Virus record (IMG/VR): IMGVR_UViG_3300036770_007547
Coordinates: 124,001 to 188,000 of that record
Strand: one strand, 5' to 3'
DNA: 64,000 bases
The first letter of the stretch is position 1, and each line of letters begins with the position of its first letter. Below are positions 7,171-27,319 of the stretch, piece by piece. Under the pieces are notes generated by a model. The model searched no databases, had not been told where the DNA came from, and worked only from the letters and a program-made list of their open reading frames with translations. The translations under genes and the position numbers were made by a program.

Positions 7171-7193
7171 TCTTGCACGCTACCAAAAAAGCG

Positions 7194-7937: not shown

Positions 7938-7955
7938 GCTGGATCCCTGTCCAGA

Positions 7956-7962
7956 TATTTAT
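7956..7962 (-). promoter_or_regulatory. T4-like late promoter (ATAAATA)
   Basis: Overlaps the upstream TGA and lies 18 nt before the ATG at 7937. Confidence 0.65.
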
Positions 7963-8686: not shown

Positions 8687-8695
8687 CTTGATTCC

Positions 8696-9967: not shown

Positions 9968-9999
9968 AGAAAATCCTCCCTGTATGTAGCAGGGAGGAT
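9968..9999 (-). terminator. Hairpin terminator / RBS-sequestering stem
   Basis: 10-bp perfect stem ATCCTCCCTG-N7-CAGGGAGGAT followed by TTTCT and then the ATG. Confidence 0.6.
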
Positions 10000-10015
10000 C
10001 CAGAGCACAACAGAA

Positions 10016-10552
10016 TTAACTGCTTTGTTCGACTCGAGCCAGCGTCACTGTGCCGTTGTTGGCAGCACCAGATTTGATGGCTGTTTCACCTTCAACACCC
10101 TGGAAGAAGTTGAGGAACCAACGATTGTTGTTCCAATCAACACCCCATTTGTTGGTGATGCGCTTGAGACGGATCGCGGTAGAATCACCGGTGTAAACAG
10201 TGATGGTCATGCTGCCCGAAGTGAGTGCGCTGTCGGCCTCATCACTGAGTGTGCAGACTCCAGATGCGCCATTAGTGGGATCGTACACCAAGAACTTGCG
10301 GCTGCCTTTGGCACGAAGGATGTATCCATCTTGTTCGTCTTGGCCAGCGATGTAAACTCGAACGCCGATGGTAGGGAAGTTGGAAGTACCGCCATTGGCA
10401 GTAGTGGTAGTGAGCTGGTCACCGCCCACCACACCATAAAACTCGGCCGAATCCAGACCATCTGGTGTCACTGGGTTGGTAAGAGTGCTGACTTGCGGGA
10501 AACCAATGTCTTTGGTTGTGTTTGCTTTTTGGATTTTGAGAGGACGTCCCAT
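10016..10552 (-). CDS. Hypothetical virion protein downstream of the capsid gene (MGRPLKI..., 178 aa)
   Basis: AGGAG SD favours the ATG at 10552 over the ORF-track start at 10579. Confidence 0.7.
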   Translation of the reverse strand: MGRPLKIQKANTTKDIGFPQVSTLTNPVTPDGLDSAEFYGVVGGDQLTTTTANGGTSNFPTIGVRVYIAGQDEQDGYILRAKGSRKFLVYDPTNGASGVCTLSDEADSALTSGSMTITVYTGDSTAIRLKRITNKWGVDWNNNRWFLNFFQGVEGETAIKSGAANNGTVTLARVEQSS

Positions 10553-10560
10553 TTTGTTTT

Positions 10561-10634
10561 CTCCTATAAAGAAGTCCAATGTGGGTTCTAGCCACTACGC
10601 GGCGGGTTAGACCGCATAAGACGCCGATTGCGTC
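10561..10634 (-). ncRNA. Putative structured cis-regulatory 5' leader (four hairpins)
   Basis: Stems GACGC/GCGTC, TATGCGG/CCGCGTA, GTGG/CCAC and CTTCT/AGGAG lie between a late promoter and the start codon. Confidence 0.55.
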
Positions 10635-10639
10635 ACAAG

Positions 10640-10646
10640 TATTTAT
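10640..10646 (-). promoter_or_regulatory. T4-like late promoter (ATAAATA)
   Basis: Lies immediately 5' of the structured leader. Confidence 0.7.
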
Positions 10647-10648
10647 GT

Positions 10649-11248
10649 CTAAGGGGAGATCTGCCAGCTCTTGCTGTAGGTATAGACCCAGACTGGTCGT
10701 GTGATAGTGTTGCTTTGATACAGTCGATTGCTGTTGTCTGTTGATGTGGTTTCGGTCATGTGTGCGTAGAATCTATGACTGGTAAAAGTATCCTGTGCAC
10801 CACCATCAACATCTGCACCTTGTATCACATAGGTAGCACGATTGGTAAAGAATGTACCCCAATAGTCGCGATTGCCAAGATCGGTATGAGTATGGCCTCC
10901 GTAATCAATGCCCGTGCTGTTAAAACTGTTGGAGTTTTGTTGTCGCACGATCTGCCAGTTGCCAGTGATGACGATTCGACAGCGACTGGCAGGGTAGAAA
11001 ACCGAATCTTCGCCCACATAGTCGGTGAGCTGATTTCCAATCACGGCTATGGACCAGTTCGTGGCCTCTACACGCAATGCGCCACCGTCGTCGGGTTTGG
11101 GATGTGTGAGACTTAGTCCAAACGTGGCTTGATCGTTATAGCCTGCCTGGCTGAAATTCCACAGTCCTTGTTCAACAACGGTTAGGCCGTTTGTGACTGT
11201 GAGCTCGGCAGTACCTGATAGGCTGTCTGGTGCAAAGAAACTAGGCAT
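10649..11248 (-). CDS. Hypothetical protein (199 aa), possibly virion-associated
   Basis: Start moved to the ATG at 11248, downstream of the gp23 terminator and 4 nt after TTAAATA. Confidence 0.6.
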   Translation of the reverse strand: MPSFFAPDSLSGTAELTVTNGLTVVEQGLWNFSQAGYNDQATFGLSLTHPKPDDGGALRVEATNWSIAVIGNQLTDYVGEDSVFYPASRCRIVITGNWQIVRQQNSNSFNSTGIDYGGHTHTDLGNRDYWGTFFTNRATYVIQGADVDGGAQDTFTSHRFYAHMTETTSTDNSNRLYQSNTITRPVWVYTYSKSWQISP

Positions 11249-11265
11249 ACTATATTTAAGCCAAC

Positions 11266-11291
11266 AAAAAAGCCCCTTGCGGGGCTTTTTT
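11266..11291 (-). terminator. Rho-independent terminator after the major capsid gene
   Basis: AAAAAAGCCCC-GCAA-GGGGCTTTTTT on the minus strand, with a GNRA loop and symmetric A/T tails. Confidence 0.9.
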
Positions 11292-11312
11292 GATTTGAGT
11301 GTTGCTCTCTGA

Positions 11313-12530
11313 TTAGGAGAACGACAGGTTCGAAACAGCGATCTCACCAACATAGTCGCCTGCGTTACCGAAGGACGAAGCTGTGTTTGTAAGCTCGATG
11401 TAACCGTAGCGAGTCATAAAGCTCACGACGGGTTCGAACGTTGTGGGATCCAGCACAACACCCGAGCTCATCAGGGGGATGTAGGGGCAGTAGAATGCCG
11501 CTGCATCAGCCTCGGACGAACCTTTGTAACCAACCAGCACAGGAGTGCTGTCAGAAGCGTAGGAGTCAACAAACACACGCATAGCGCCGTTCAGTGTTCC
11601 AACGAACTTGGTGTTGGTGGGTGCTTCGAAAGTACCTTCTGTGGTACGAGCGAAAGCAGAAGTTGTTGCGGACTGGAGCACAGTCAGCGAAGCAGGCGAC
11701 ACAACCGCCCAGTTACCAGCACCGCGACGTGTGCGCTGTGCAATCAGGTTGGCAACACGATTGATGAGAACAGCAAGAGCAGCATGCTCGTCACCAACGA
11801 ATGTAGCTGTACCAGAAACGGTAGCTTGGTTGTATGTGAACTCGGTCTGGGCCAGGCTGCGGAGGGACAGGAGGATCTCCTGATCGATTTCAGCAGTGAT
11901 TTCCTGAGCCAGCGCGGCCATGATTTCTGCCTCAACGTCAATGCCGTGCATGGCTTGTGCGTCTTGAGCAGCTTCAAATGTCCAGCGAGCTTGCAGCTTA
12001 CGAGTTTTGGCTTCAACTGCTTGCTTGAGGATCTGCACAGAGATCTGACGACCACCGTTGCCCTCGAGTGTTGCAGTGGGAGAACCAGCATAGCCTTGAG
12101 CAGCAGTCTGGGTCGTGGCAGCGTTAGAAGCACCACGAGCGCCGGCCGAGTAGGCTGTAGCGATCTTGAAGGGGCTGAGTGCCTCTTCACCAGCAACCAC
12201 AGAAGTAGCGGCTGCGGTTTGATCGGTCATTGTAGAAGCATAACGCACACGCAGAGTGTGGATCTGTCCAACAGGACCGGTCATGGGCTGCACACCAACG
12301 ATCTCGTTAGCGATCACAGTGGGCATAACCCGTCGAATCACTGGCAGAATCACACGATTCAGCGTAGCGATATTACCAGACACGGTAGAACCCGAGCTGG
12401 CATTCTCTTTCAGGTACTTACGAGTGTTTTCGAGGATCACACCCATGGTGTTGCGACGGCTTCCTTTGAGGCCTTCCATGAGGGCATCTTTGGTCTCGTC
12501 CCAACGGCTTTCAAGTAGTTCTTGTGACAT
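11313..12530 (-). CDS. gp23: Major capsid protein (T4 gp23 family)
   Basis: VGVQPMTGPVGQI, VEAKTRKLQARWTFEAAQD...HGIDVEAE, FYCPYIPL and FMTRYG motifs. Confidence 0.97.
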   Translation of the reverse strand: MSQELLESRWDETKDALMEGLKGSRRNTMGVILENTRKYLKENASSGSTVSGNIATLNRVILPVIRRVMPTVIANEIVGVQPMTGPVGQIHTLRVRYASTMTDQTAAATSVVAGEEALSPFKIATAYSAGARGASNAATTQTAAQGYAGSPTATLEGNGGRQISVQILKQAVEAKTRKLQARWTFEAAQDAQAMHGIDVEAEIMAALAQEITAEIDQEILLSLRSLAQTEFTYNQATVSGTATFVGDEHAALAVLINRVANLIAQRTRRGAGNWAVVSPASLTVLQSATTSAFARTTEGTFEAPTNTKFVGTLNGAMRVFVDSYASDSTPVLVGYKGSSEADAAAFYCPYIPLMSSGVVLDPTTFEPVVSFMTRYGYIELTNTASSFGNAGDYVGEIAVSNLSFS

Positions 12531-15406: not shown

Positions 15407-15414
15407 TATTTATA
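15407..15414 (-). promoter_or_regulatory. T4 late promoter TATAAATA containing the portal stop codon
   Basis: Exact consensus. The TAA of gp20 lies inside it. Confidence 0.75.
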
Positions 15415-17191
15415 CTGTGGGGGCAGCGCCCGCGGCCGGGGGTGCCGCTGCTCCAGCAGCTGGTTGCTGTCCGGGTGCCATTTCTGCGCCGCCCAGGTCG
15501 GCTCCCAGGTCGGGAGTACCAAGTTCTTGACCGGTGTTGATATCGCTTTCAAGATCCGAAGGTGTTATGCCCACGCTGCGGAGATCGGTGCCTGCCACTG
15601 TGGGTGCATCGGGTTTGGCCCGTTCTTCGTGCCAGAGTTCTTCGTTCTCGCGGATCTCATCTTCGCTGAGTCCAAGATAGCGTTTGAGCAGGAAACGCTT
15701 GCTGAGATAGGGAACTGCATCTAGACTACCAAAAGTGTTGACACGAGTGGTGTCCAGCTCGGCTTCGCGATAGCTGGCAAAGTTTTGTGGAGGATTGAAG
15801 TTGACATTGAACAATCCGGAATCAATGTTGAATCCACGCCAGCGCAGGAACATCTTGAACTCGTCGTCCAACTTTTCTATGATCAATCGCTGCAAACGTT
15901 CACAGTATTGGTTGAATCGGTATTCCTGAATCAGGGCAGTGCCTAGACGTCCATCACTGTAGGTACGGTCGCTGTCGTCGGGCCCGGTGGGTAGATAACT
16001 GGATGGCACACGCAGCGCCCGGATCATCTTGTTGTTGAAGTACTTGAGATCGTCAATCTCACCGAGATTGCTGCCGCCCGGCAACACTTCAACGGATGAC
16101 CCACGCCCATCAGCAGTTTGCGGAAAGAAGTAGTCTTCGTTGATGCTGAGCGGATTGTAGCTGCTGTCCATGATGTTGTTGCCACCGCCGGTGTTGCTGG
16201 GTATGCGACGCTGATGTATCTCGTTTTTCACTCGCTCCACAAAAGCCATGGCCATGTGTGATGGCATGTTGCCCACGTCGATCTTGAACACCCGGCGCTC
16301 TGGAGCACGGGCCACACGATAGATCAACACCGAATCTTCCAAGAGTTCTTTTTGCTTGAACACACGGAATATGGTTTCCAGTATGCTTTGTCCAAACGGC
16401 CAGTAGAAATCCAAACCTTCGGTGAGGCTGAGGTGTACGATGTGTTTGGCATCCAACACAGCCTCGTTCATGGCTGCGGCAAATCTAGTCTGTCCAGTGC
16501 CTACACCACCCGCCGAACTGTTGGGCACAGTGTAGTTCTGTGGTGCGGTATAGCCTAGCGTGGGCGGATTGCTCTGATAGTCGGTGGTGGTCTTGGCAGC
16601 TACCGTGAGATTCTGGAAGTTGGGATTGATGTCGCGGACCACGTATTGCTCGGGACGTTTGCCTTCGCTCTCGTTCACGATCACACGAGCCACTTTGGTC
16701 ATGTCAACCCAGTACAGCTCAAAAGTCTCGGGATCACGCACAAATACCTGATCACCATACTTGAGGGTGTTGCGGAAGATGCGGAAGATGCGCTGATCCA
16801 GCTTGTTGAGTTTGACCCACTGCTGTAATTGTTGTTTGATGATCTTGACTTCGTTGTCAGTAGGATCATCGTTGTAGGTCACACGAAAAGGTACCTGATC
16901 GCCGTCTTCTTTTTGTGTGCTGAATTCGGCCAGGATGTCGAGACAGGCATTGATCTCGCTGTCGCAGTCCATTTGCTCGTATTGATTGTAGCGTTCGATA
17001 CGATTGGGGTGGCCCGAATACACCTCGGGCAAACGGCTGGCATAGTTGCGATAAACGATTTCAGCATGATTGGTTAATGGATCACGCCCATCATTGCGTC
17101 CGTAACCGGGCAGCCCGTCTTCACCGCGACCCGATAGTGGACTGAGTTGACCGCCAGTGTTTGCGACTTTAAAGTATTTTTTCCATGCCAT
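15410..17191 (-). CDS. gp20: Portal vertex protein (gp20)
   Basis: LLEDSVLIYRVARAPERRVFKIDVGNMP, EDYFFP and LPGGSNLGEIDDLKYF motifs. Confidence 0.97.
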   Translation of the reverse strand: MAWKKYFKVANTGGQLSPLSGRGEDGLPGYGRNDGRDPLTNHAEIVYRNYASRLPEVYSGHPNRIERYNQYEQMDCDSEINACLDILAEFSTQKEDGDQVPFRVTYNDDPTDNEVKIIKQQLQQWVKLNKLDQRIFRIFRNTLKYGDQVFVRDPETFELYWVDMTKVARVIVNESEGKRPEQYVVRDINPNFQNLTVAAKTTTDYQSNPPTLGYTAPQNYTVPNSSAGGVGTGQTRFAAAMNEAVLDAKHIVHLSLTEGLDFYWPFGQSILETIFRVFKQKELLEDSVLIYRVARAPERRVFKIDVGNMPSHMAMAFVERVKNEIHQRRIPSNTGGGNNIMDSSYNPLSINEDYFFPQTADGRGSSVEVLPGGSNLGEIDDLKYFNNKMIRALRVPSSYLPTGPDDSDRTYSDGRLGTALIQEYRFNQYCERLQRLIIEKLDDEFKMFLRWRGFNIDSGLFNVNFNPPQNFASYREAELDTTRVNTFGSLDAVPYLSKRFLLKRYLGLSEDEIRENEELWHEERAKPDAPTVAGTDLRSVGITPSDLESDINTGQELGTPDLGADLGGAEMAPGQQPAAGAAAPPAAGAAPTV

Positions 17192-17205: not shown

Positions 17206-20200
17206 CTAGTTAGCTTGTGCTTGCAGCAACTTCTCCACGGTGCGATTGTTGTCGCGCTGTAGTCCCACAAGATTTTCCAATTGCCGCACAAGATCGCTCA
17301 TGTTCTGCATCTCGACCGGTATTGGCGATGTGTTGCGTAGATTACCGGCAGGCCCCAACAACGATGAAGGTTCAGTTTCGGGAATTTCGGGTTTATTGGG
17401 TGTAGTTGTGTCGGTGTCCAGGCTTGCGTTCACTGTGGTGATGCGATTTTGTATTTCTGCCATTGCTTGTGGCACAAATTTATCAAAACCTCCAATGCTG
17501 TCACCAAACAAACCCATGCCTGAGATAGCTTCTTGACTTTTCTGATTGAACTGACCCATGCCTGTGCCGAGTCGATCAAATCCAAGACCCATGCCTTTGC
17601 TGAGTTCGGCTATGCCACGCTGCTGTGCTTCGTATTGCTCTCGAGTGGCCTTGCGACCATTCACGGTGTACTCTACTCGTTCAGTGGCAGCTTGTTTTTC
17701 AGCCAATCTCAGTTGATCTATGGCTTTTTTGCTGTCACCAAACAGTGTGTCCCAGATGCGATCAAAGAATCCTGGCTTGGCCGTGGGCGGCTCAGCCTTG
17801 TCAGTGCGCTGACCAAAAGTGGCAAATCCCTGTCCAAGGATACGTTTGAGTTCACCAAAAGGATCGTTGACAAATCTCATGGGTATGGATTTGCCTTGCA
17901 AAGGTATCACAGCTTCGGGACCGGCTTCACCTGCGATGCTGGGGCCTTGGGTGATGCCGCCCTTGGCCATGAAATTTTGGCTCAGTTGTTCTAGAGTTTG
18001 CAAAGGTTTGGCTTGGGTAGCGGCTGCCACATCAAGTCCACGATTCACAGCTTCCTGGGTGGACTGGGACAGGATCTCAGCCATCCGTTGCACTTCGGCA
18101 CGGAAACTTTGGCTGTCATTGCGTGATGTCTCAACGATCTCGCTTCTGGTCAGCAGTTTGAGTGTGCCATCAAGCCGTGAGATCTTTTTGATGAGAGCAT
18201 CATTGTCAAGACCTTTGATGTCCACTGGTATGCGCCGGCCATCAGGCAAGGGCACAAAGGCTTCGTTCTGGCCGGCCTCGGCGGCAGTGACCTGCACACC
18301 GCCTGGGCGGGCTGGTATCACCCCACCGTCACGCATGTAAATGTGCGGTGGATCACCAAAGCTGGCACCCCACTTGAATCCGTACTTGTTCAACAAACCC
18401 GACTGTGCCAGGAACGAAGCTTCGTTGGAATTGATGTCAACCGCCATGCCTTGCTGATGTTTGCTCATGCCAGGTGCAGCACGTGGTCTACCACCCGAGT
18501 TGATTCTCGCTTGTTCTTCCACGCTGCGGTAAGCTGAATTGATGCTGAGCACTCGGCCAGTGAGTTGCTGATACTCCGCGCCCATGTTGATCATGGCCTG
18601 CTGCACCGCGGGATTTAATTTTTCAAAATGGTTTTCGCTGCCGGTTCCAGATCCAAATCGGAACAGATCCTGCACACTTGATCCCACCGAAGGTGCTCCT
18701 CCACCACTGGCTCGCGGTATCTGAGCCTGTCCGCCTTTGGGAGCCGGCACAGCTGGCGCGGTGGCTGATCTTGTGCCCACATTGCCAGTAGCGGGAGCGG
18801 ATCTTTGCATGGCTCCCGCGGCCTGTGCAGGTTTGGCAAAATTCTGTTGGGCTTGTATCGTGGCAGATGCCAGTGCCTGCTGTTTTTCCTGTTCGGTGAC
18901 GCGAGCAAACAGTCCCTTGCTCTGACGCAGTATCTTGAGTTTCTGCTCAAACAGTTCCGTGCGTCTTTCCACGTATTTGCGATAGTTTTCGTTGTCTTTT
19001 TGGGCAAACTCAGCATCGTCAAACACATAGTCAAGGGATTTCTTGATCTCGTCGATCTCTTGCTGGCGGATAGCCGCCAAAGCATCGGCTTGATTTGATC
19101 GTTCGCCGGTCAGTTTTTGCCACCAAGACAAATCTTGGTCCACACGTGTCTGGGCTAGATCGCTGGCATCTTTGGCTGTGCGAGCTTGCTGTTGCTCGTG
19201 TTGAATCTGTATCTTGCGCTGGGCTGCGCCAGCACGATTGGCACGTTCGTAGAACTCGTTCCGTGCCTGTTCCTCGGCGGCCTGCTGGATGCGCATGCGC
19301 TCGAATTGCGCTTGATTCGGGCGCATTTTTTCCAAGCGACCTTGTTCGGTGCGTAGCATCTCCCGGCGAAGTTCGTTGATTCGTGATTGATACTGCTGAA
19401 ACCCTTCGCGATCGTTTTCGGCGAACGTCGCGTTGCTCCAGGTGGCCTCTTCGGTCACGCGAGTGCCACGTGTGATGGCTTTTTGTGATTCCAGTTGCTT
19501 GGCAGCTTGATCCACGGCCTGTGCTGCAAGTCCCGTTTGCTGCTGTTTGTTGCTCCAGAGGCGATCCCACCAAGATGCTTCTTTTTGGGCCTGTTCTATG
19601 GCCTGTTGTGTTGCTTGTTTCCGTGCATCGGTTTGTTTTTTCTCGCTGTCACCGGTGCCGCTCTCTTGCTTGTTGTTGCGTTGTTTTTTGTTGTCGACCA
19701 AGCCATAGTCAATGAGACCAAAGTAGCCGGCTGCGCCGCCCAGGGCCGCACCAATACCAGCACCTATGGCTGTCCCAACACCCGGAATGATGCTGCCTAT
19801 GGCAGCACCGGCTGTGCCCAGTGTGGTGGCCCCGGCTGCTGCGCCAACCTTTCCAGTTAGAGCGCCGGTCTTTTCGTCGGTGATTCCGCCCAGGGTGCCT
19901 GATTTTTGCAACACCGACGCATCGCTCAGCGTGGGTATGTCCATGCCAGTTTCTTTGGCCACGTGGCGTATGAAATCGTTGAGTGCGCCGGTGAATTGAT
20001 TCACAGCCTCAGCGGCTGCTGGCATGGCTGCAAACGCAAATGTATCCATCTGACGTGCCAGCTGATCCATGCTCTTCTGCGCATCCACAGTGCTGTCGGT
20101 CAAAGGATCGGTACCTTTGCGCATCTGAGCTTCTTGCTCGTTGGCCAGTCGCACCTGACCGTCAATGATCCGGGCGTTGACTAGATCGCTTTTCTGTGCA

Positions 20201-21858
20201 TAATTGGTCATGACACCGGCCGAGTCGCCCGTGGCTTTGGCGAGATCTCGGCTGGTCTGCATGTTGCGGGACGTGGCTTCTTGCAGTTCTTTGAAGGCCT
20301 GTATCTGATCAATGTGTCCGGCCTTGAGACGATTCATGATGTCCACCGATGCACCACCGGTGTCCACAAACAGTTTTTGTGCTGCTTCGGTGTTGACAAA
20401 TCCCGCTGCTACATCACGGAATCCTTGCCCCATCTCAGGTGCGGCCTTGCTGACCATGGTCTGGAAGTCCAGCATGGCCTTGGCTTCTTTTTCTCGGCCC
20501 TGGGCCACCATCTCGTCGTACTGAGCACGGAATCTAGCTTCGCCCAATGCAGCATCTTGCTGGGATTGGATTTCTTTGCGCTGCATGCCAGTGAGCTTGC
20601 TGAGTTGATCCAGCTCCTTGGCATACTGCATGGCACCTTGTGTGAGCTGTGCGTTGGTCTTGCGCTGGGAAAGACCCAGTCTGGTCTGTTGTGTTACAAA
20701 AGCACCAGCAGTGTCGCTGATGTCGCTGGCACTGAAGCCCAGGCGACGCAGTTGATCACCAAGATCGCTGCGAGTGATGTCGCCCACAAACTTGGAAAAT
20801 CGTTTGGCGCCCTCGCCCACGGTGCCACCAAATCGTGCCAGGGCCGAGGAATTTTCAGCCACAGCACGCTTGTAATCGTCGAGACTGACACCGCTTTCAA
20901 TGAACTGGCGTTGCAGTTCGGTCATGCCACCTGCGGTCAGCGCACCAACTGAACTGACATCACGGAACGCTTCTGCGGCTTTTTGCAGGCGGTCCAACAC
21001 AAACTTGGAACCTTCGGCGGCCAACTGTAGCGACCCCGAAAGAACAGTGCCCAATATGGGTATGCTTTCCAGCATCTTGCCCAAGGACTGGACCACGCCA
21101 TCGATCACGCCGTTGAACTGTGTGAATCCTTTGGTGCTGTCGCCTATCGACAGCAGGCCTTTGCCCAGGCCAACCATGGTCTTGCTGGCGCTTTCTGCGG
21201 CCGATTGCACACGGAGCATCGCCATCTGCACTGCCATCGCGGTCTGGGCATTCTTGGCCAAGCTCGGGCCCAAACGGCTCTTGATGATCATGTCGCCGAA
21301 ACGACCCAGGCGAGATTCTAAGCTGCTGTACTGGTCGATCTGCTTGATGCGTTCCTTGGCCAGCATCTGGCCATAATTGCGTTCATAGCCGATCTTTTCA
21401 TACTGATCTCTGAGTTCGGCTTGCAGAGCTTTCCAACGTTCGGCCTGTAGCTCTTCGGCCTTGCGCTTTTCATAGGCCGCACGTTCCTCGGCGCTCATGC
21501 GAGCCGTGCGAGCAGCATCTTGCTGGGCCTGTGCTAAAGACGCTGCCGAATCAGCGGCTTCCTGATCGGCTTTGGCTTTTTCGATCGAAGCATCGATCTC
21601 GTCTTTGACAGCGTCTGTGGCACGATCCACGGCCTTGACGAAATCTTGCAGTTCTCGATCGGCTTTGGCGCGTGTGACTGTGTCTTTCTTGATCTGGCTG
21701 CCCAAGCGTGCCAGCGCCTGCACTATGCGTTCGGTGCCACGATCAAATTTGCGAGCCGAGTCCTGGCCCGAGGCACCGGTGGTGCCCATTCTGCGAGCCA
21801 CTTGGACAAATTCTTTGAGCTGTGTTACTAGTTCGTCAATGTCATATTGATCGGCCAT
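17206..21858 (-). CDS. Tape-measure-like protein with a peptidase M15 (Zn D-Ala-D-Ala/L-Ala-D-Glu peptidase-type) domain
   Basis: Long Ala/Gln-rich helical ORF with a Gly-Ala hydrophobic stretch, SAYRS..EQ, SKH..GMAVD and DPPH motifs, and two GG...GEAGPEAVIPL-type motifs. Confidence 0.75.
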   Translation of the reverse strand: MADQYDIDELVTQLKEFVQVARRMGTTGASGQDSARKFDRGTERIVQALARLGSQIKKDTVTRAKADRELQDFVKAVDRATDAVKDEIDASIEKAKADQEAADSAASLAQAQQDAARTARMSAEERAAYEKRKAEELQAERWKALQAELRDQYEKIGYERNYGQMLAKERIKQIDQYSSLESRLGRFGDMIIKSRLGPSLAKNAQTAMAVQMAMLRVQSAAESASKTMVGLGKGLLSIGDSTKGFTQFNGVIDGVVQSLGKMLESIPILGTVLSGSLQLAAEGSKFVLDRLQKAAEAFRDVSSVGALTAGGMTELQRQFIESGVSLDDYKRAVAENSSALARFGGTVGEGAKRFSKFVGDITRSDLGDQLRRLGFSASDISDTAGAFVTQQTRLGLSQRKTNAQLTQGAMQYAKELDQLSKLTGMQRKEIQSQQDAALGEARFRAQYDEMVAQGREKEAKAMLDFQTMVSKAAPEMGQGFRDVAAGFVNTEAAQKLFVDTGGASVDIMNRLKAGHIDQIQAFKELQEATSRNMQTSRDLAKATGDSAGVMTNYAQKSDLVNARIIDGQVRLANEQEAQMRKGTDPLTDSTVDAQKSMDQLARQMDTFAFAAMPAAAEAVNQFTGALNDFIRHVAKETGMDIPTLSDASVLQKSGTLGGITDEKTGALTGKVGAAAGATTLGTAGAAIGSIIPGVGTAIGAGIGAALGGAAGYFGLIDYGLVDNKKQRNNKQESGTGDSEKKQTDARKQATQQAIEQAQKEASWWDRLWSNKQQQTGLAAQAVDQAAKQLESQKAITRGTRVTEEATWSNATFAENDREGFQQYQSRINELRREMLRTEQGRLEKMRPNQAQFERMRIQQAAEEQARNEFYERANRAGAAQRKIQIQHEQQQARTAKDASDLAQTRVDQDLSWWQKLTGERSNQADALAAIRQQEIDEIKKSLDYVFDDAEFAQKDNENYRKYVERRTELFEQKLKILRQSKGLFARVTEQEKQQALASATIQAQQNFAKPAQAAGAMQRSAPATGNVGTRSATAPAVPAPKGGQAQIPRASGGGAPSVGSSVQDLFRFGSGTGSENHFEKLNPAVQQAMINMGAEYQQLTGRVLSINSAYRSVEEQARINSGGRPRAAPGMSKHQQGMAVDINSNEASFLAQSGLLNKYGFKWGASFGDPPHIYMRDGGVIPARPGGVQVTAAEAGQNEAFVPLPDGRRIPVDIKGLDNDALIKKISRLDGTLKLLTRSEIVETSRNDSQSFRAEVQRMAEILSQSTQEAVNRGLDVAAATQAKPLQTLEQLSQNFMAKGGITQGPSIAGEAGPEAVIPLQGKSIPMRFVNDPFGELKRILGQGFATFGQRTDKAEPPTAKPGFFDRIWDTLFGDSKKAIDQLRLAEKQAATERVEYTVNGRKATREQYEAQQRGIAELSKGMGLGFDRLGTGMGQFNQKSQEAISGMGLFGDSIGGFDKFVPQAMAEIQNRITTVNASLDTDTTTPNKPEIPETEPSSLLGPAGNLRNTSPIPVEMQNMSDLVRQLENLVGLQRDNNRTVEKLLQAQAN

Positions 21859-21871
21859 GGTTTTCTGCGCC

Positions 21872-21898
21872 TATAAATAACTGCATCTAGATATTTAT
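21872..21898. promoter_or_regulatory. Face-to-face late promoters serving divergent genes
   Basis: TATAAATA on + at 21872-21879 and ATAAATA on - at 21892-21898. Confidence 0.75.
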
Positions 21899-21911: not shown

Positions 21912-22748
21912 ATGGAAACCAATCCCTTACGCCAGTATTTCCGGCAACCCGCCATCTATGTAAAATTGCCATCTGGCGGCAAATACTACCCCAAAGACAG
22001 CCTGGAGGTCACCGAAAACGGAGAGTATCCGGTGCTGCCCATGACCACCATGGACGAGATCACTTACCGTACACCAGATGCCTTGTTCAACGGCACTGCT
22101 TCGGTGAATGTGATCCAGAGCTGTGTGCCCAACATCAAAAATGCCTGGCACATGCCCAGCATGGACATTGACACTGTGCTGATAGCCATACGCATAGCCA
22201 GTTATGGTCATGAACTCAAACTGGACACCCAGTGCACCAAGTGTGCCAGCATCAACACGTTTGGCGTGGACTTGCGCACAGTGATGGAACGCATGCGTGC
22301 TCCGGACTACAGCCAGACCCAGACCCTGGGTGACCTCGAAATCTATTTCAAACCCATGGATTATCGGCAGATCAATGACAACAACATGATGCAGTTTGAA
22401 GACCAAAAGATGCTGCAAATGCTACAAGATGCCAACGTCAACGACGAGGACAAGCTGCGTCAAGTCGGTGATGTGCTGCGGAAAATCACCAGCATGACCA
22501 CACGGGCCTTGGCACAAAACATTGCCATGATCAAGACTCCCCAGGCCACAGTGACCGAGATCGAGTGGATCTCCGATTGGCTGGAAAACTGCGATCGTAG
22601 CACGTTTTCCAGCATACGCGATCACATCATCAACACCAAGCAGCAGGGCGAGCTACAGCCGCTGAAGATACAGTGCCCAGACTGCCAGAACGAGTACGAG
22701 CAACCATTCACCTTGGACATGGCAAATTTTTTCGCGGACGCCTCCTGA
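21912..22748 (+). CDS. Baseplate hub/tail assembly chaperone (gp26-like)
   Basis: YVKLPSGG, PMTTMDE, DIDTVLIAIRIASYG, two CxxC motifs and a C-terminal NFF. Confidence 0.8.
   Translation: METNPLRQYFRQPAIYVKLPSGGKYYPKDSLEVTENGEYPVLPMTTMDEITYRTPDALFNGTASVNVIQSCVPNIKNAWHMPSMDIDTVLIAIRIASYGHELKLDTQCTKCASINTFGVDLRTVMERMRAPDYSQTQTLGDLEIYFKPMDYRQINDNNMMQFEDQKMLQMLQDANVNDEDKLRQVGDVLRKITSMTTRALAQNIAMIKTPQATVTEIEWISDWLENCDRSTFSSIRDHIINTKQQGELQPLKIQCPDCQNEYEQPFTLDMANFFADAS
22724..22733 (+). other. Putative -1 ribosomal frameshift slippery site (A AAT TTT / T TTT TTC)
   Basis: Two overlapping in-frame X XXY YYZ heptamers 4-5 codons before the stop. The -1 frame is open to 22963. Confidence 0.7.
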
Positions 22749-22963
22749 CCCTAGATGCTGACCGCATCACCAAATGGATTGATCAGATGGAAAAGGAGGC
22801 CAAGATCATCCGCGCCGAAACTCTCAAAATGTGCTGGCACATGCGTGGTGGTCTCAGCTACACCGAGGCCATGAATCTCAGCCAGGGCGAACGCGACGAG
22901 ATCGCTACCATGATCAAAGATCATCTGGAAACCACCAAGAAAAGCGGATTACCTTACTTTTAA
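22724..22963 (+). CDS. gp51-like C-terminal chaperone module, probably expressed as a frameshift extension
   Basis: -1 frame KFFRGRLL...CWHMRGGLSYTEAMNLSQGER. The TAA overlaps the next ATG. An independent start at ATG 22787 is possible. Confidence 0.65.
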   Translation, partial: KFFRGRLLTLDADRITKWIDQMEKEAKIIRAETLKMCWHMRGGLSYTEAMNLSQGERDEIATMIKDHLETTKKSGLPYF

Positions 22964-23466
22964 TGGATCAAGTGCAGGCCAGAATTGATGTCACGAACTG
23001 GATCACTGGATTCGTGGAAAAACCTTCGCCGTTGTTGAATGGATGGCCGCCGTGTCCCTATGCTCGGCAGGCCCGGCTAGAGAATCGCGTGGATATACGC
23101 ATGGGATCTCACCCCTATCACGATCTCGAGCAGCTGGCAACACAGGGCTTGGGCGATCTAGACGTGGTGGTGCTGGTGTACGATCCCGGTCAATTTGATC
23201 TGCTCACGTTCCGCAAACACTGGCAATCGGCACAGCAACATCTGCATGCCCGTGGCCTTTTGGTGCTGGAAGATCATCCCAGCGAGCCCGAGATGGTGCG
23301 CGGAGTTTGCATGAATCAAGGCACCTGGGCTTTGTTGTTTGTGCAGGACCTCAAGCGGCTCAACGATGCTGCCCAGCAGCTGGCCACCAAAGGTTACTAT
23401 CACAATTGGCCGCGCGAGTATCTCAACGATCTGTTCCAAGGTCGTGCAGATCCAACACAGACTTGA
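22963..23466 (+). CDS. DUF1415-like protein (167 aa)
   Basis: TAATG-coupled start. W..GFVE...PCPYA and EDHP motifs resemble the DUF1415 CPFA/FHP motifs. Confidence 0.5.
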   Translation: MDQVQARIDVTNWITGFVEKPSPLLNGWPPCPYARQARLENRVDIRMGSHPYHDLEQLATQGLGDLDVVVLVYDPGQFDLLTFRKHWQSAQQHLHARGLLVLEDHPSEPEMVRGVCMNQGTWALLFVQDLKRLNDAAQQLATKGYYHNWPREYLNDLFQGRADPTQT

Positions 23467-24109
23467 TACGGCTGTCTCGATCACACAACCACTGGTAGTG
23501 TTCAACGTCGTTGCTCCAGGCCGATCCGGTCCACCATTCAAATCCGGCCACACGACTCTTGTAGCGATTCACACGTTCGTAGCCGGGTCCCATGTACACC
23601 CAACGATAGCCGTGCCGACGAGCCCAGGCCAATTCGTGTTCCAGTGTTCGCAGGCCCAGTTTTAGATCGGGCTCGCGATAGTCCCAGGCAAACAGCACAG
23701 TTTCGATGGACCAAGGCGAATAGGGTCTCAGCTTGCTCCAGGCCACGAGATCGCCGCGCCAATCACGATAACCCATGTACACATCATTGGCCAGATCATC
23801 GTTGACTTCAAAGTACTTGCGGAATCCTCGATGCAGGCAGTAGGCCGAGTAGATGTGATCCAATTCGGTGCGCGGTACTGGATCCAGTATCTCGGCATCC
23901 GGCATGATGTCGTAGGTGATGGCGCTGAGATCACAGCGAGTGCTGCGACTCTGATACCATCGCGGCTGTCCTTGATGAGCAGTGGCCAGCCAGCCTAGAT
24001 TGATGGCCTCTTCGTGTTCGTGTGGTTGTACATCTGTGAGCTCGGCGCGATAGTGATAGACTTCGCCTTTTTCCACCAGACCAAAACTGTGATCAAACGT
24101 GAGATTCAT
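23423..24109 (-). CDS. Aminoacyl-tRNA-protein transferase-like protein (ATE1/Bpt family, GNAT fold)
   Basis: GW near the N-terminus, and LGLRTLEHELAWARRHGYRWVYMG.GY....RYK..V.GFE matches the ATE C-terminal signature LG....E...A...G....YLG......YK. Confidence 0.7.
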   Translation of the reverse strand: MNLTFDHSFGLVEKGEVYHYRAELTDVQPHEHEEAINLGWLATAHQGQPRWYQSRSTRCDLSAITYDIMPDAEILDPVPRTELDHIYSAYCLHRGFRKYFEVNDDLANDVYMGYRDWRGDLVAWSKLRPYSPWSIETVLFAWDYREPDLKLGLRTLEHELAWARRHGYRWVYMGPGYERVNRYKSRVAGFEWWTGSAWSNDVEHYQWLCDRDSRIKSVLDLHDLGTDR

Positions 24110-24146
24110 CGTAAGTAATTATCTATAGACATAAAGGTACAGCAAA

Positions 24147-24479
24147 ATGGACATCTATCATGTATGGGCCGACAAGCAAGAAGGCATCTCTGACACCGAA
24201 TGGGTGACAAACATGCGAGCATTTTTTGATCATCTAGTCAGCGAAGCACGCATGGAAAGCTATCGCATCACACGATGCAAGATGGGATTCCGCAGCATCG
24301 CGGACTTGCCGGAATGGCATATCATGATGGAATTTCGTGACATGGCACAACTCGAGCAGTGCTTTCAACGAGTAGCTCCACGCGAAGGTGAACTCGAAGA
24401 CAAGCATCGCAGTTTCAATCAGTTCGTGTCAGGAAATATCCAGCATGCGTTGTTCCGGGATTGGCCCGATCAGTTATGA
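24147..24479 (+). CDS. DUF6614-like protein (110 aa, probable ferredoxin-like alpha/beta barrel)
   Basis: YHVW, YRITRCKMGF, EWHIMME...QLE..F and LFRDWPD pattern, recalled from this family. Confidence 0.55.
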   Translation: MDIYHVWADKQEGISDTEWVTNMRAFFDHLVSEARMESYRITRCKMGFRSIADLPEWHIMMEFRDMAQLEQCFQRVAPREGELEDKHRSFNQFVSGNIQHALFRDWPDQL

Positions 24480-24553
24480 GATCTACTGCGTAGATCTATC
24501 GATTTCGCTGCGCTCATCGATGTTTTTTTTATTGGACCGAGCGCAGCGAGTTC
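24478..24553. other. ssDNA hairpin cluster with two inverted GAGCGCAGCGA (primosome-assembly-site-like) motifs; may also terminate transcription
   Basis: AGATCTAC-N3-GTAGATCT; ATCGAT-[motif]-ATCGAT on -; GGAC-[motif]-GTTC on +; T8 run between the two copies. Confidence 0.5.
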
Positions 24554-24554
24554 A

Positions 24555-24929
24555 GCGTATCATCCAGATGCAACGGTCACACTTAGCCCGTTGCCGGGCC
24601 AAGAAAAAACTGAGGCATCATCCGAGTGCATCACAGTCACACAGCGTTAGAGCTACGAACAGACTTGTTCACGTAGGCGGTTGTCCGGTACCTACTCACT
24701 CCGTCTTATCACAACGGCAACACAGGTGTCGTACGCTGTCACGACGCATGTGCCTGGGGTTTCGCTCCCCTCATTGGGCCTTTTGTATCCTTTTCAAACA
24801 ACCAAACGGCAGGTCTTTGCCATCGTCATCCCGGGGGGTAGTGGTTGAGTGCCCACTGGTGCGGTGGGTCTTCCATCCCTGCGACTCGGGGTCCAGGTCT
24901 AGGGCACAAGAAATTGGCCTGTGCGAGCC
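24555..24929 (-). ncRNA. Putative large structured non-coding RNA (~370 nt) with a pseudoknot
   Basis: About ten consecutive stems, G-U pairs and a GCAA tetraloop that favour the minus strand, and a 7-bp loop-to-distal complementarity. This is the only long gene-free stretch in the window. Confidence 0.65.
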
Positions 24930-25364
24930 TTAACTACCTAGTTTGCCTTTGATGTGTGATCCATGTACTCGAACCTGTATGTGACCATTGTAGTATTCGT
25001 CTGATTCCAGTACTCGTCGTGCAAATTGTTCGCGTGCTTCGATGTAACTACATTCGGCCTTGGACCTACAGTAGTACAAGATTTCGCGTTGGAAATTTTC
25101 GGTGCCCAGTCGTTCCACGTCTTGATTGAGTTCGTCGTTGCTGCCGTAATAGGTCTGCCAGTCTGAATCGATTTTGTTGCTTATGCGTTTGCGTTTTTTG
25201 TTGCCATTCTTGAGTTTGACCACACGATACGTGGTTTTCTTGAACTTGCTGAGTTTTTTGCCTATGTATTTGCGCCCTGACACTAGATTCGTGATGAGAT
25301 AAACGAAGCCCACATACTCTTCGCCGATGTGTTCCACCACATTTGATTCGAACAGCCAGGTCAT
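24930..25364 (-). CDS. Single-domain GIY-YIG nuclease (T4 endonuclease II-like)
   Basis: GFVYLITN...KYIGKK, YYGS, F.REIL, E and YYN motifs. 144 aa, with no separate DNA-binding domain. Confidence 0.85.
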   Translation of the reverse strand: MTWLFESNVVEHIGEEYVGFVYLITNLVSGRKYIGKKLSKFKKTTYRVVKLKNGNKKRKRISNKIDSDWQTYYGSNDELNQDVERLGTENFQREILYYCRSKAECSYIEAREQFARRVLESDEYYNGHIQVRVHGSHIKGKLGS

Positions 25365-25403
25365 GTTGCGTAGTTAGCTGTGTCACTGATTGATGGTCAA
25401 ATT

Positions 25404-26450
25404 CTACCATTCTGTGGTGTGCTCCTGATCTTTTAATTTTGCTCGTGTGCATTTGCTCCTGCATTCATGGCTGTCAAATTCCAGGAACTCCGTGGACCAA
25501 AACTCGTCGTTTTTGATGTCGGTGAGATTCCTCTGCCAGAGATCAAATCGGCTGGCACGATCATGCCAGACTTGATTGTGATCGTAACGGTTGGCAGTCC
25601 AACAGCAGGGATATATCTGTCCTCGGCTGTTTAAAAACACGCCTTTGTTGCCGATCAAGCAGATGCCCGAATAGGGCGTGTTGCTTTCCAACTGCTGTGC
25701 TCGCTGCCAAAACAATGTTTTTATGTCTTGGCCCGGCCTTGATCTCCGAGTAAGGCGCACATGATTGCGTTCGAATCGATGTCCATCGGGCACTAGGCCC
25801 GGTTGGGTAGGCTCCAGCAGATCTATGCTACCATACTGTTCGGGATATTTACTACCAAATTTGGTGCTACGAGTGAGCTGATAAAGGTCAAACCCCAACT
25901 GCTGTGCCAGGCTTTGCTGCTGGCCCAAATGATATTCATTGAATCTAAATGCGATGCTGTCCCACACTCGATAAGTGCTGGTGTTCACTGATGCAAACGC
26001 TGTGATGCCTGCGATGATGCTGTCCCAGTCCGAGTTCACGCGATATTGCTGATTGCTGTCTTGATCCCAACCATCCAGGCTCCAGTGTACCTCGTCGTGT
26101 TCGCCCAGCACATGCCCCAGATATTGCCACCAGTCTGGTGGTTTGTAACTGCCATTGGTGATGATGGTGATGGCCACTGTGGGATTCAGGGTCTTGAACC
26201 ATACACAGATGTCCACGAGATCGCGACAGTAGATGGGATCTCCGTCGTTGCCGCAGAACGTGATCTTTTTCAGTTCCTGCACATGCTCGGCGCCAAACTG
26301 GCGTTGGAAAAACGCCAAAGTGAGTTGTCGATTCAAGAGACTGTCGGGCAATTCGGCCCTGGGACATCTCGGGCATTTCAATGCGCATATCGAACTGGGT
26401 TCGATATGCCAGTGATCCCATTTCAGCACAGCTTTTCCTCTCGCTGCCAT
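25404..26450 (-). CDS. Radical SAM protein with a Twitch/SPASM-like C-terminal domain
   Basis: CALKCPRC, CGNDGDP, ITNG, SLDG and YPCCW...C...C motifs. The true start may be GTG 26429. Confidence 0.9.
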   Translation of the reverse strand: MAARGKAVLKWDHWHIEPSSICALKCPRCPRAELPDSLLNRQLTLAFFQRQFGAEHVQELKKITFCGNDGDPIYCRDLVDICVWFKTLNPTVAITIITNGSYKPPDWWQYLGHVLGEHDEVHWSLDGWDQDSNQQYRVNSDWDSIIAGITAFASVNTSTYRVWDSIAFRFNEYHLGQQQSLAQQLGFDLYQLTRSTKFGSKYPEQYGSIDLLEPTQPGLVPDGHRFERNHVRLTRRSRPGQDIKTLFWQRAQQLESNTPYSGICLIGNKGVFLNSRGQIYPCCWTANRYDHNQVWHDRASRFDLWQRNLTDIKNDEFWSTEFLEFDSHECRSKCTRAKLKDQEHTTEW

Positions 26451-27319
26451 TGATCTTGGAAAGCAGTGACATCATGATCGGTGCCACAAGTGCTCAAGCA
26501 AGTTGGTTCGGGGCTGTTGGTATTCCACGACGCTTGCACAGCATCAAAGTCTGTGACATAGTTTTTCAGTCGATTGCCCAGCCAGCAACAGGGATGTATG
26601 CGTCCGCGACAATCCATGTAAAGGCTCTGCTCGTTCAAGGCATGGCATCGTATCTGTTTTTTTCCCGAGCGTGGCTGCGCCCAGTTCACCGGAGCTTCAA
26701 GCCCCGACAGCATGGGCCTCCGAGACACCTTGGCTCGGAACCAACTGAACCCCATGAGGCGCGCGAGATCTCGGCATTCATCGACTTGATGTTGATTGTG
26801 CTTGAACACCAGCATGTCCCAATGCGCTCGTCCACCGCCCGAAATAAATGCTTCCACGTTGGCGATCACTCGACGCCATTCCACACCGCGACGATACACA
26901 GCATTGGTGTCGTCCAGTCCGTCGATGCTGAACACCACGTAATCTTGTTCGCGGTTCATGATACGACCCAGCTCGTACCACCAAAACGTGCCTTGCACAC
27001 CACCATTGGTGTTCATGCCCAGCGTGATGGTGGGATTCTTTTGCCGGAACCAACGATAGATGGCCTGCGTGTTCATGCCCGCTGCGGGATCTCCGTAGTT
27101 TCCACACATGAACATCTTGTCCAGACCCGATATGAATTCGTCGTTGAATTGGGCAGCGATCTGTTCCACACGCAGATGATGGTGCCTGCGCCGATCAAAA
27201 TCAGCGTCGGTTTCTCGACTGCATTGAGCACAGCGTGCCTGGCACACGTCGGTGGGCTCGAGGTGCAGTACTCGTATGTTACGTGATGTCCACGTCGGTG
27301 TTGTAGCTGGTGAATCCAC
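26423..27319 (-). CDS. Radical SAM protein with a Twitch/SPASM-like C-terminal domain (paralogue)
   Basis: CQARCAQC, CGNYGDP, NTNG, FSIDG and HPCCW...C...C motifs. Start codon uncertain. Confidence 0.9.
   Translation of the reverse strand: MDSPATTPTWTSRNIRVLHLEPTDVCQARCAQCSRETDADFDRRRHHHLRVEQIAAQFNDEFISGLDKMFMCGNYGDPAAGMNTQAIYRWFRQKNPTITLGMNTNGGVQGTFWWYELGRIMNREQDYVVFSIDGLDDTNAVYRRGVEWRRVIANVEAFISGGGRAHWDMLVFKHNQHQVDECRDLARLMGFSWFRAKVSRRPMLSGLEAPVNWAQPRSGKKQIRCHALNEQSLYMDCRGRIHPCCWLGNRLKNYVTDFDAVQASWNTNSPEPTCLSTCGTDHDVTAFQDQWQREEKLC

Follow-up and report, generated by a model that had tools for sequence, protein, structure and literature searches.

The three genes examined here lie side by side within a 64,000-nt stretch (hereafter, the window) of the IMG/VR virus record IMGVR_UViG_3300036770_007547 (positions 124,001 to 188,000 of that record), which belongs to a giant T4-like phage. 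Gene A (22963-23466, plus strand) encodes a protein of 167 aa, and its ATG overlaps the TAA of the preceding gene; gene B (23423-24109, minus strand) encodes a protein of 228 aa; and gene C (24147-24479, plus strand) encodes a protein of 110 aa. No alternative genetic code was needed to read them. The 3' ends of A and B overlap convergently by 44 bp (23423-23466), and similar overlaps of 32-62 bp are found in related loci, whereas B and C diverge from a 37-bp AT-rich spacer (24110-24146). The sequence facts in an earlier note on this region, namely the tail-to-tail overlap, the divergent spacer with its overlapping GTAAGTA (24111-24117, plus strand) and ATAATTA (the minus-strand reading of 24116-24122), and the motifs CPYA (residues 31-34) and DHP (104-106) in A and RCKMGF (43-48) and EWH (56-58) in C, were all confirmed.

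Genomic context and regulatory signals

On the A side, the cassette is flanked by a gp26-like baseplate hub gene (21912-22748, plus strand; T4_baseplate, 56.2 bits), the constant neighbour of the cassette, with the same flank family found in 88 of the 98 related loci that have a flank on that side. Between this gene and A lies a conserved gene of 58 aa (22787-22963, plus strand), with genes of 58-70 aa at the same place in related loci; it stays with gp26 rather than with the cassette, and in one related locus, L005, two nucleotide-metabolism genes separate it from A. A match to the T4 late-promoter consensus, TATAAATA (21872-21879, plus strand), lies 33 nt before the ATG of the gp26-like gene and is one of three exact matches in the window, against 0.25 expected. 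It is inferred to be the likely start of a late transcript that also carries gene A.

The spacer between B and C holds a palindromic TAATTA(T) element 7 nt from the ATG of B and an AAGG ribosome-binding site before C. The TAANTA motif itself is at chance level, occurring 33 times in the window against 33.4 expected. However, an AT-rich ATAATTAT-type element next to the start codon of B and an AAGGA Shine-Dalgarno sequence before C recur in the 31-45 bp spacers of 22 related loci. No sigma-70-type promoter was found in the spacer, and the hairpins after C are no better than those of shuffled sequences (z -0.57). Given that A sits behind a putative late promoter together with the gp26-like gene, that B is on the other strand and that no RNA data were found for the region, co-regulation of the three genes, as proposed in the note, is not supported on present evidence.

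Gene A is predicted to encode a small sandwich-fold protein distantly related to thiolate-heme hydroxylases

The product of A has no Pfam hit of its own. Its AlphaFold model is confident (pLDDT 95.6) and shows a central four-stranded sheet flanked by helices, six in all. The best solved match is the thiolate-heme N-hydroxylase AglA (9ub3; Z 7.3, rmsd 4.0, 153 of 167 residues aligned), followed by a match at Z 4.5 only, although a Z score of 7.3 is within the range considered middling by the comparison tool. The model also matches a DUF1415/DUF6875 Atlas cluster with a TM score of 0.80. By contrast, a Foldseek search against the PDB alone returned nothing at E <= 0.001, and sequence searches of the PDB with the A profile or with a divergent member gave only chance hits.

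At the sequence level, 20 of 27 relatives of A match DUF6875 (cytochrome P422; PF21780) at E <= 10 (best E 9.7e-7, 29.5 bits against a cut-off of 24.5), albeit with only one of them above the curated cut-off and only over the first 45-60 residues, which span the N-terminal helix and the Cys motif. The note had labelled A as DUF1415-like, but the DUF1415 model (PF07209) finds nothing in the whole phage record at E <= 10, and only 6 of 27 relatives give weak hits (best E 1.1e-4, below the cut-off of 26 bits), so that this label reflects a remote resemblance only and DUF6875 is closer. Residues C31, P32, A34, D104, E110, G120, Y146, W149 and R161 are invariant in 27 sequences, and divergent members read VCP at the Cys-Pro motif, as in P422. 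The remaining P422 signatures are not kept: position -5 from the Cys, which is Arg in the RxGxVCP motif (the propionate-binding residue), is Asn or Gly, there is no Rx(M/L)x3Dx2F or Dx2(Q/H)x3K, and M117-x2-G120-x-W/Y only resembles MxGxF (bioRxiv 10.64898/2025.12.11.692455).

Gene B is a divergent homologue of Ate1/Bpt aminoacyl-tRNA transferases

The B protein alone matches ATE_C (PF04377) at only 18 bits, below the cut-off of 25, but 23 of 28 relatives hit this GNAT domain (best E 2.8e-9), the family profile finds structures of the arginyltransferase Ate1 at E 2e-4, and the predicted fold aligns with the leucyltransferase Bpt, both enzymes of N-degron pathways, over residues 1-212 (TM 0.71 to Bpt clusters). 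E159 and Y183-K184, invariant in 28 sequences, align with Glu277 of the aminoacyl pocket and Tyr303-Lys304 of the active site of klAte1, residues shown by mutation to matter (PMC9351520). Other hallmarks of the family are missing. Neither B nor its relatives hit ATE_N (PF04376), and following the conserved G39-W40, a position inferred rather than aligned to be equivalent to the GxRRSG motif (Arg80) that reads an acidic protein N-terminus, the sequence is L-A-T-A, with no conserved Arg. Similarly, no cysteine is found among the invariant or nearly invariant columns of the alignment, indicating that the Cys4 zinc or iron-sulfur site is lacking. The family has its own WYQSRSTR and EWWTG motifs.

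Gene C is a DUF6614 protein with a predicted dimeric alpha+beta-barrel fold

C is a clear member of DUF6614 (PF20319; 82.2 bits, cut-off 25), aligned over residues 1-109 to profile positions 1-107 of 116, and is the most conserved of the three proteins: of its 998 relatives, at least 120 are 74-85% identical. The model (pLDDT 78.9) displays the ferredoxin-like beta-alpha-beta-beta-alpha-beta fold of the dimeric alpha+beta-barrel (DABB) superfamily, with dimerization being inferred from the fold alone. There are 49 PDB matches at E <= 1e-3 (TM up to 0.67), those inspected all being DABB-fold or related small ferredoxin-like proteins, including several small-molecule enzymes (OAC cyclase, YgiN, LsrG and methylmuconolactone isomerase) alongside proteins of unknown function.

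The cassette is tightly linked in uncultured phages but not in bacteria

The note's reading would have been refuted by an independent distribution of the three genes, and we found that, in phages, they are not independently distributed. In a locus scan anchored on a narrow alignment of A, all 80 viral loci carry a B-type gene and most also carry C; conversely, 73 of 74 C-anchored viral loci with enough flank carry both A and B, so that the module as a unit is far beyond chance. The adjacency of A and B persists in four arrangements, namely convergent overlap, A followed by a truncated B (B') and C, B followed by A, and divergent orientation. The full-length, inverted B of the window is the minority form, whereas most phages have a co-directional operon with a B' of 144 aa, reduced to the GNAT core, in which the genes abut or overlap by a few bases; in those phages no full-length copy of B exists elsewhere, including in two complete genomes. 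The flank on the C side is highly variable, with at least 12 families, while the cassette stays intact. In another related locus, L004, the three genes lie together in a different neighbourhood, with no gp26-like gene in the 12.7-kb locus.

The cassette occurs in hundreds of uncultured aquatic phage contigs (295 B, 546 A and at least 563 C relatives in IMG/VR), including complete genomes of 344-364 kb. The B relatives were recovered from IMG/VR only with an alignment, a scan with the single protein having found nothing. Among the cultured phages of the collection searched, a megablast search with positions 22000-26500 gave no match and tblastn searches found no relative of B or C, the only hit of A being a distant relative in the podovirus HMO-2011 (26% identity), which carries the A-like gene alone. 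A full-text literature search found no description of the cassette.

Outside this lineage, the genes separate. B occurs alone in more distant phages, and 0 of 76 bacterial DUF6614 loci carry A or B; nor do the latter have a conserved partner, given that SDR, acyl-CoA dehydrogenase, GFA, amidase, asparaginase and a peptide ABC ATPase each appear in at most 12 of the 76 loci. Searches for possible companion genes in the phages were also negative: tryptophan halogenase, seen near the cassette in L004, and 2Fe-2S ferredoxin were each found in 0 of 6 genomes, and a PADLOC search for defence genes gave no match. A test of an A-C complex with heme included scored 0.00, which is not evidence either way.

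Possible functions of the cassette

What the analysis establishes are the gene models, the family and fold assignments (the latter from predicted structures) and the tight linkage of the three genes in a lineage of aquatic T4-like jumbo phages, whereas heme binding, oxygenase activity, aminoacyl-tRNA-dependent transfer, the order of the steps and the substrate are all inferred. The interpretation offered in the note, a co-regulated, protein- or tRNA-dependent modification pathway in which, for example, an oxidation step primes a substrate for aminoacyl transfer, is thus partly supported: the unit is real in phages and the coupling of oxidation to aminoacyl transfer gains support from the relatedness of A to thiolate-heme hydroxylases and of B to Ate1/Bpt, but neither the co-regulation nor the extension of the linkage to bacteria or to HMO-2011 is.

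We tentatively favour a scenario in which A binds heme through Cys31 and, using host electron donors, hydroxylates a nitrogen or carbon of an amino-acid-type substrate, as do AglA and the P422 enzymes; B would use an aminoacyl-tRNA, possibly carrying a basic amino acid, because the Ate1-type Glu is kept, to add an amino acid to the same substrate, before or after the oxidation; and C would act as an accessory or tailoring partner of the oxygenase. In this view, the substrate is a small molecule (a free amino acid or short aminoacyl compound) rather than a protein, and the product would be a modified amino-acid derivative made during infection. This preference rests on the fact that all characterized relatives of A act on free amino acids or dipeptides, on the small-molecule enzymes among the structural matches of C, and on the lack of the RRSG motif in B and its reduction to the GNAT core in most phages. 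There is a precedent in AglA, which works on a substrate made with AglC and tRNA, and the valanimycin pathway likewise pairs an N-hydroxylase with a tRNA-dependent transferase. Nevertheless, heme binding by A is inferred from fold and one motif, in the absence of biochemical data for any of the three proteins, the nearest characterized relatives of B modify proteins rather than small molecules, and no phage ferredoxin was found.

The alternatives are less likely, but one of them remains a live rival. B might be a protein N-terminal aminoacyl transferase that adds a destabilizing residue to proteins, perhaps after A oxidizes the N-terminal residue, marking them for ClpS-guided degradation by phage or host Clp proteases. 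Its closest characterized homologues by sequence and predicted structure, Ate1 and Bpt, and the invariant Glu are consistent with this possibility, as is the presence in the same phage record of ClpS (83.7 bits), a ClpX-like ATPase, Hsp20 and two ClpP; ClpS is also present in 5 of 9 related large records, including both complete genomes, and phage ClpS and ClpP are known in jumbo phages (PMC7824862). However, ClpS lies about 123 kb away and is equally present with both forms of B, and hence may be only a lineage trait, A appears to be a late gene, whereas host take-over would be expected early, and the absence of the GxRRSG motif and the Cys4 site, the prevalence of the mini form of B and the small-molecule substrates of all known relatives of A make this reading doubtful. 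Its most elaborate version, and an unlikely one, although not excluded, is a phage-encoded N-degron writing system, whereby A oxidizes the N-terminal residue of selected proteins, B or its mini form adds the destabilizing residue from an aminoacyl-tRNA, and the phage ClpS with ClpXP, or the host ClpAP, destroys the marked proteins, as a bacterial-virus counterpart of the oxidise-then-arginylate branch of the eukaryotic Arg/N-degron pathway, in which cysteine oxidation precedes arginylation.

About as doubtful is the possibility that the three are unrelated accessory genes with separate functions, neighbours only by descent at the edge of the conserved baseplate module. The near-constant gp26-like flank, which means that part of the synteny could be inheritance, the existence of each family alone elsewhere, and the opposite strand of B without an evident shared promoter are compatible with it. 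Against it, the linkage survives inversion and truncation of B, relocation of A to either side of B, and insertions, the three genes are rarely split despite the free turnover just beyond C, the common form is operon-like, and in L004 they lie together without the gp26-like gene. Least likely is that B is a Fem/MprF-type transferase aminoacylating a cell-envelope component (a peptidoglycan precursor or lipid), with A and C as unrelated redox helpers: two relatives of B also hit Acetyltransf_6, the Atlas neighbours include bacterial ATE_C+Acetyltransf_6 clusters, and the GNAT fold is shared with FemX and the aminoacyl-phosphatidylglycerol synthases (PMC9351520), but ATE_C is by far the dominant match, there is no membrane domain, and the strict pairing with A would remain unexplained.

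The cassette joins two enzyme types that were characterized only recently, non-P450 thiolate-heme hydroxylases and tRNA-dependent aminoacyl transferases, here in minimal form (167 and 144-228 aa). If the small-molecule reading holds, phages make a modified amino-acid derivative during infection; if the protein reading holds, phages rewrite protein N-termini for degradation. Either way, DUF6614 and the DUF6875/DUF1415-like phage proteins gain a testable context, and the proteins offer very small scaffolds for biocatalysis.

Relationship to known systems

Among the closest parallels is AglA with the tRNA-dependent ligase AglC, from the argolaphos pathway of Streptomyces monomycini, along with the YqcI/YcgG heme N-hydroxylases, to which A is also distantly related. 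AglA, an Arg-dipeptide hydroxylase in which Cys44 is the heme ligand (PMC12866846), shares with A the four-stranded sandwich and an N-terminal Cys, and both are paired with a GNAT enzyme that uses, or in the case of B is inferred to use, aminoacyl-tRNA. However, A is much shorter (167 against 243 aa), lacks the C-terminal loop that shapes the substrate pocket of AglA and has no sequence-level match to it, the transferase is of the Ate1/Bpt type, there is a third, DABB partner, and the setting is a phage rather than an actinomycete gene cluster. The P422 enzymes, Cys-ligated heme hydroxylases of Trp with the same sandwich fold, are the closest Pfam family to the relatives of A, but are 180-300 aa long and encoded next to tryptophan-metabolism genes, not transferases (bioRxiv 10.64898/2025.12.11.692455). 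With regard to C, the DABB superfamily also includes stress-response Dabb proteins and EthD, a P450 helper. The function of DUF6614 is unknown, but C shares D2, Y4, H5, R40, R43, K45, E56, H58, H87 and N91 with its bacterial homologues, and the conservation of the phage copies is unusually high.

Genomic context and gene models

The window covers bases 124001-188000 of a 222,775-bp IMG/VR virus record judged to be 64% complete, and the region is T4-like. It contains a gp20 portal gene at 15410-17191 (-), a 1550-aa gene at 17206-21858 (-), the sequence of which is repeat-rich and coiled-coil-like, a gp26-like baseplate hub gene at 21912-22748 (+), a 58-aa gene, the three genes considered here, a SegE-type GIY-YIG endonuclease gene at 24930-25364 (-), two radical-SAM genes, and gp46- and gp47-like recombination nuclease genes. 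The two adjacent radical-SAM genes, at 25404-26450 (-) and 26423-27319 (-), lie between SegE and the gp46-like gene, have Cys-rich C-terminal parts and recur near the cassette in related loci. Among the sequencing runs searched, the only one containing most of the stretch is a subsurface metagenome, whereas small shares occur in lagoon and lake samples and no RNA run contains it.

The arrangement described in the earlier note proved to be exact. Gene A is located at 22963-23466 (+) and encodes 167 aa, gene B at 23423-24109 (-) encodes 228 aa and gene C at 24147-24479 (+) encodes 110 aa, with no alternative genetic code involved. As the note had stated, A and B overlap tail-to-tail by 44 bp, and B and C share a 37-bp divergent spacer. 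GTAAGTA lies at 24111-24117 and the palindromic TAATTA at 24116-24121. The peptide motifs CPYA and DHP are present in A, and RCKMGF and EWH in C. However, as a pattern, TAANTA is no more common in the window than in shuffled sequences (33 occurrences against 33.4), and no sigma-70-type promoter was found in the spacer. Nevertheless, the layout of the spacer is conserved: in 22 distinct related spacers of 31-45 bp, an ATAATTAT or TTAAATA-type element abuts the start codon of B and an AAGGA ribosome site precedes C. Three exact copies of the T4 late promoter, TATAAATA, occur in the window, at 9400-9407 (-), 15407-15414 (-) and 21872-21879 (+), against 0.25 expected, and at least the third lies just upstream of a gene start, that of the gp26-like gene. 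Given that the ATG of A overlaps the stop codon of the preceding gene, A is inferred to be, most likely, a late gene co-transcribed with baseplate genes.

Gene A, a predicted thiolate-heme-like protein

The product of gene A has no Pfam or NCBIfam hit and matches only two PHROGs of unknown function. The earlier note labelled it DUF1415-like, but the DUF1415 model finds nothing in the whole record at E <= 10. A word search yielded 396 relatives, none of which has a Pfam domain on record, and an alignment of 27 of them contains invariant C31, P32, A34, D104, E110, G120, Y146, W149 and R161. The AlphaFold model is very confident (pLDDT 95.6) and has four strands and six helices. Foldseek found no solved relative, whereas an exhaustive structural aligner placed AglA (9ub3) first, at Z 7.3 with 153 of the 167 residues aligned, the next chain scoring 4.5. 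Because best scores of Z 7-8 are common, this match on its own is only a lead, but it is supported by three further results. Of the 27 relatives, 20 match DUF6875 and 6 match DUF1415; one passes the DUF6875 cut-off, and the matches always cover the N-terminal helix and the Cys motif. The ESM Atlas places a DUF1415/DUF6875 cluster at TM 0.80 over 161 residues. Finally, the same architecture has been described for both relatives: AglA is a heme enzyme with a four-stranded-sheet sandwich fold and Cys44 as the axial ligand (PMC12866846), whereas DUF6875, renamed cytochrome P422, is a Cys-ligated heme family with a VCP motif that hydroxylates tryptophan using ferredoxin and its reductase (bioRxiv 10.64898/2025.12.11.692455). 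Thus, A is best described as a minimal, divergent member of this thiolate-heme superfamily, which lacks the P422 arginine and the P422 substrate motifs. Heme binding by A is inferred, and the equivalence of Cys31 to the heme ligand rests on the motif, on a partial Pfam alignment and on a fold match taken as a whole rather than residue by residue.

Gene B, an Ate1/Bpt-like transferase homologue

Taken alone, the product of gene B is a sub-threshold ATE_C hit, but the evidence from the family is clear. We identified 69 relatives, several with ATE_C on record; 23 of 28 aligned members match ATE_C; the family profile finds Ate1 structures at E 2e-4; and the Atlas model of B aligns with Bpt clusters carrying ATE_N+ATE_C at TM 0.71 over residues 1-212. 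In the alignment of the family profile with the Ate1 structures, invariant E159 and Y183-K184 correspond to klAte1 Glu277 and Tyr303-Lys304, when the 4-residue tag of chain 7wfx is allowed for in the numbering. Glu277 binds the arginine of Arg-tRNA and is Gln in the leucine-specific Bpt, whereas Lys304 is an active-site residue (PMC9351520), which hints, by inference, at a basic donor amino acid. By contrast, B has no ATE_N match or RRSG motif and no conserved cysteines, two respects in which it departs from Ate1 and Bpt. Its acceptor is therefore unlikely to be the acidic protein N-terminus of the classical enzymes.

Gene C, a DUF6614 protein

C is a full-length DUF6614 protein (82.2 bits) and the most conserved of the three, with 998 relatives, at least 120 of which are 74-85% identical. 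Its model (pLDDT 78.9) has the ferredoxin-like order of strands and helices and matches 49 solved chains at E <= 1e-3, which include DABB-fold or related small ferredoxin-like proteins, for instance, At3g17210, YgiN, LsrG, olivetolic acid cyclase and methylmuconolactone isomerase. Bacterial homologues of 36-49% identity exist in many Proteobacteria and other phyla and share D2, Y4, H5, R40, R43, K45, E56, H58, H87 and N91 with the phage protein.

Linkage of the three genes

Independent distribution of the three genes across genomes had been named beforehand as the observation that would count against a common pathway. The neighbourhoods of B homologues from the protein database already showed DUF6614, B and a convergent 157-184 aa gene together, and systematic scans of IMG/VR yielded 295 B, 546 A and at least 563 C relatives. 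The fetched loci were searched with profiles built from the three proteins; these were the best 80 per scan rather than random samples, and many are close relatives. Among the 80 best B loci, A is adjacent in most of those where B is about 35% or more identical to the B of the window, and C is adjacent in the closer ones, whereas the most distant B genes (33% identity or less) stand alone. Each of the 80 best A loci has a B-type gene, and nearly all have C. Among 74 C-anchored loci with enough flank, 73 have both A and B, and the exception has them a few kb away on the same contig.

Two main architectures exist. The common one, found in most related phages (among loci L090-L169 and L255-L334), is a co-directional, tightly packed A -> B' -> C arrangement, in which B' (for example, at 4498-4932 (+) of locus L133) is a 144-aa protein covering only positions 57-191 of B, that is, the GNAT core with the Glu and Tyr-Lys, but without the N-terminal domain and the EWWTG end. 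In five B'-type records, two of which are complete genomes with terminal repeats, B' is the only B-family gene. The form found in the window, with full-length B inverted between A and C, is the minority and accounts for 5 of 73 loci in the C-anchored sample. Two further arrangements occur, namely, co-directional B->A, and A and B divergent. The flank beyond A is almost always the gp26-like gene, whereas the flank beyond C belongs to at least 12 different families. In L004, a 359,566-bp metagenome contig, the three genes lie together with no gp26-like gene in the 12.7-kb locus; here, at 2670-10606, the cassette is flanked by genes for Fe-S assembly, Fe-superoxide dismutase, an eIF-1a-like protein, a sugar nucleotidyltransferase and a tryptophan halogenase, the last being absent from six other genomes of the group.

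Outside this lineage, the genes separate. None of 76 bacterial DUF6614 loci has A or B within 5 kb, and these loci have no strongly conserved neighbour at all. Four contigs filed in bacterial MAGs (L175, L176, L177 and L178), binned as Haliscomenobacter, Legionella and Bacteroidales, carry phage-like (68-79% identical) copies of C; the two long Haliscomenobacter contigs carry the full A-B'-C set and the Legionella contig carries B and C, but these are probably phage contigs mis-binned into those genomes. The cultured podovirus Puniceispirillum phage HMO-2011 (NC_021864.1) encodes a hypothetical protein, gp66 (3483-4010 of locus L335), that belongs to the A family (profile E 1.7e-28, CPYA kept), with no detectable B or C beside it and a 111-aa gene of unknown family directly upstream. 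Thus, the genes are strongly linked within a phage lineage, across rearrangements, but the families are not universally interdependent.

Possible function of the cassette

The fold and family of each protein, as obtained from models and profile comparisons, and the linkage of the genes are what the analysis demonstrates, whereas everything concerning the mechanism, including heme binding and catalysis, is inferred without experimental or transcript data, and a complex prediction spoke neither for nor against it. The earlier note suggested a co-regulated modification pathway, for example, with an oxidation step before aminoacyl transfer, and this interpretation is supported only in part. We tentatively favour a coupled oxidation and aminoacyl transfer on a small amino-acid-type substrate, without assigning an order to the two steps. 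Every characterised relative of A acts on a free amino acid or dipeptide, several characterised DABB proteins among the PDB matches of C are small-molecule enzymes, and B lacks the motif that reads a protein N-terminus and is usually reduced to a bare GNAT core. A heme N-hydroxylase working with a tRNA-dependent GNAT ligase has a precedent in argolaphos, an N-hydroxylase is followed by a tRNA-dependent transferase in valanimycin, and the DABB protein EthD is needed by a P450 system.

The main alternative, although unlikely on present evidence, is a role in an N-degron pathway, given that the nearest characterised kin of B are Ate1 and Bpt and that the same phage record, outside the window, encodes ClpS (83.7 bits), an Hsp20, a ClpX-like ATPase with the ClpX zinc finger and two adjacent ClpP paralogues (record coordinates 24158-24472 (-), 24514-24987 (-), 25506-26702 (-) and 10202-11404 (-)). 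ClpS recurs in 5 of 9 related large records, including both complete genomes; however, it is far from the cassette and is present with both forms of B. Neighbourhood by descent alone appears about equally unlikely, being weakened by the rearrangements and by the variable C-side flank, whereas an envelope-directed, Fem/MprF-like role has little support and is the least likely of these possibilities.

No B or C relative was found in the cultured-phage collection searched, and A found only a distant one. A full-text literature search returned no paper naming ATE_C or PF04377, and no paper on DUF6614, DUF6875 or DUF1415 that describes such a cassette, the only mention of DUF6614 being an anti-Druantia gene of a coliphage with a predicted DUF6614 annotation. 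Nevertheless, the parts belong to known superfamilies and the pairing has precedents in actinomycete pathways; the N-degron reading would be far more striking but is improbable.

Additional features of the phage genome

A strong match to the orphan Rfam family RF01718, Polynucleobacter-1 RNA (111.3 bits, gathering score 37), is located at 24796-24929 (-), directly 3' of the SegE-like GIY-YIG gene, between that gene and C. A cmscan search found it in 2 of 15 related loci, whereas nhmmer with the copy from the window found it in 52 of the fetched loci (some of them the same contig fetched twice), mostly abutting or within a few bases of the stop codon of the SegE-like gene. It may belong to the homing-endonuclease element or hint at the host. 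Elsewhere in the window, a single open reading frame of 4986 aa (45188-60148 (+)) is preceded by ORFs of 1171, 900, 486 and 850 aa on the same strand. The window contains no tRNA genes, but a cluster of seven (Leu, Pro, Thr, Met, Arg-TCT, Lys-TTT and Ile) is located at the end of the phage record, at 220144-222574 (-).
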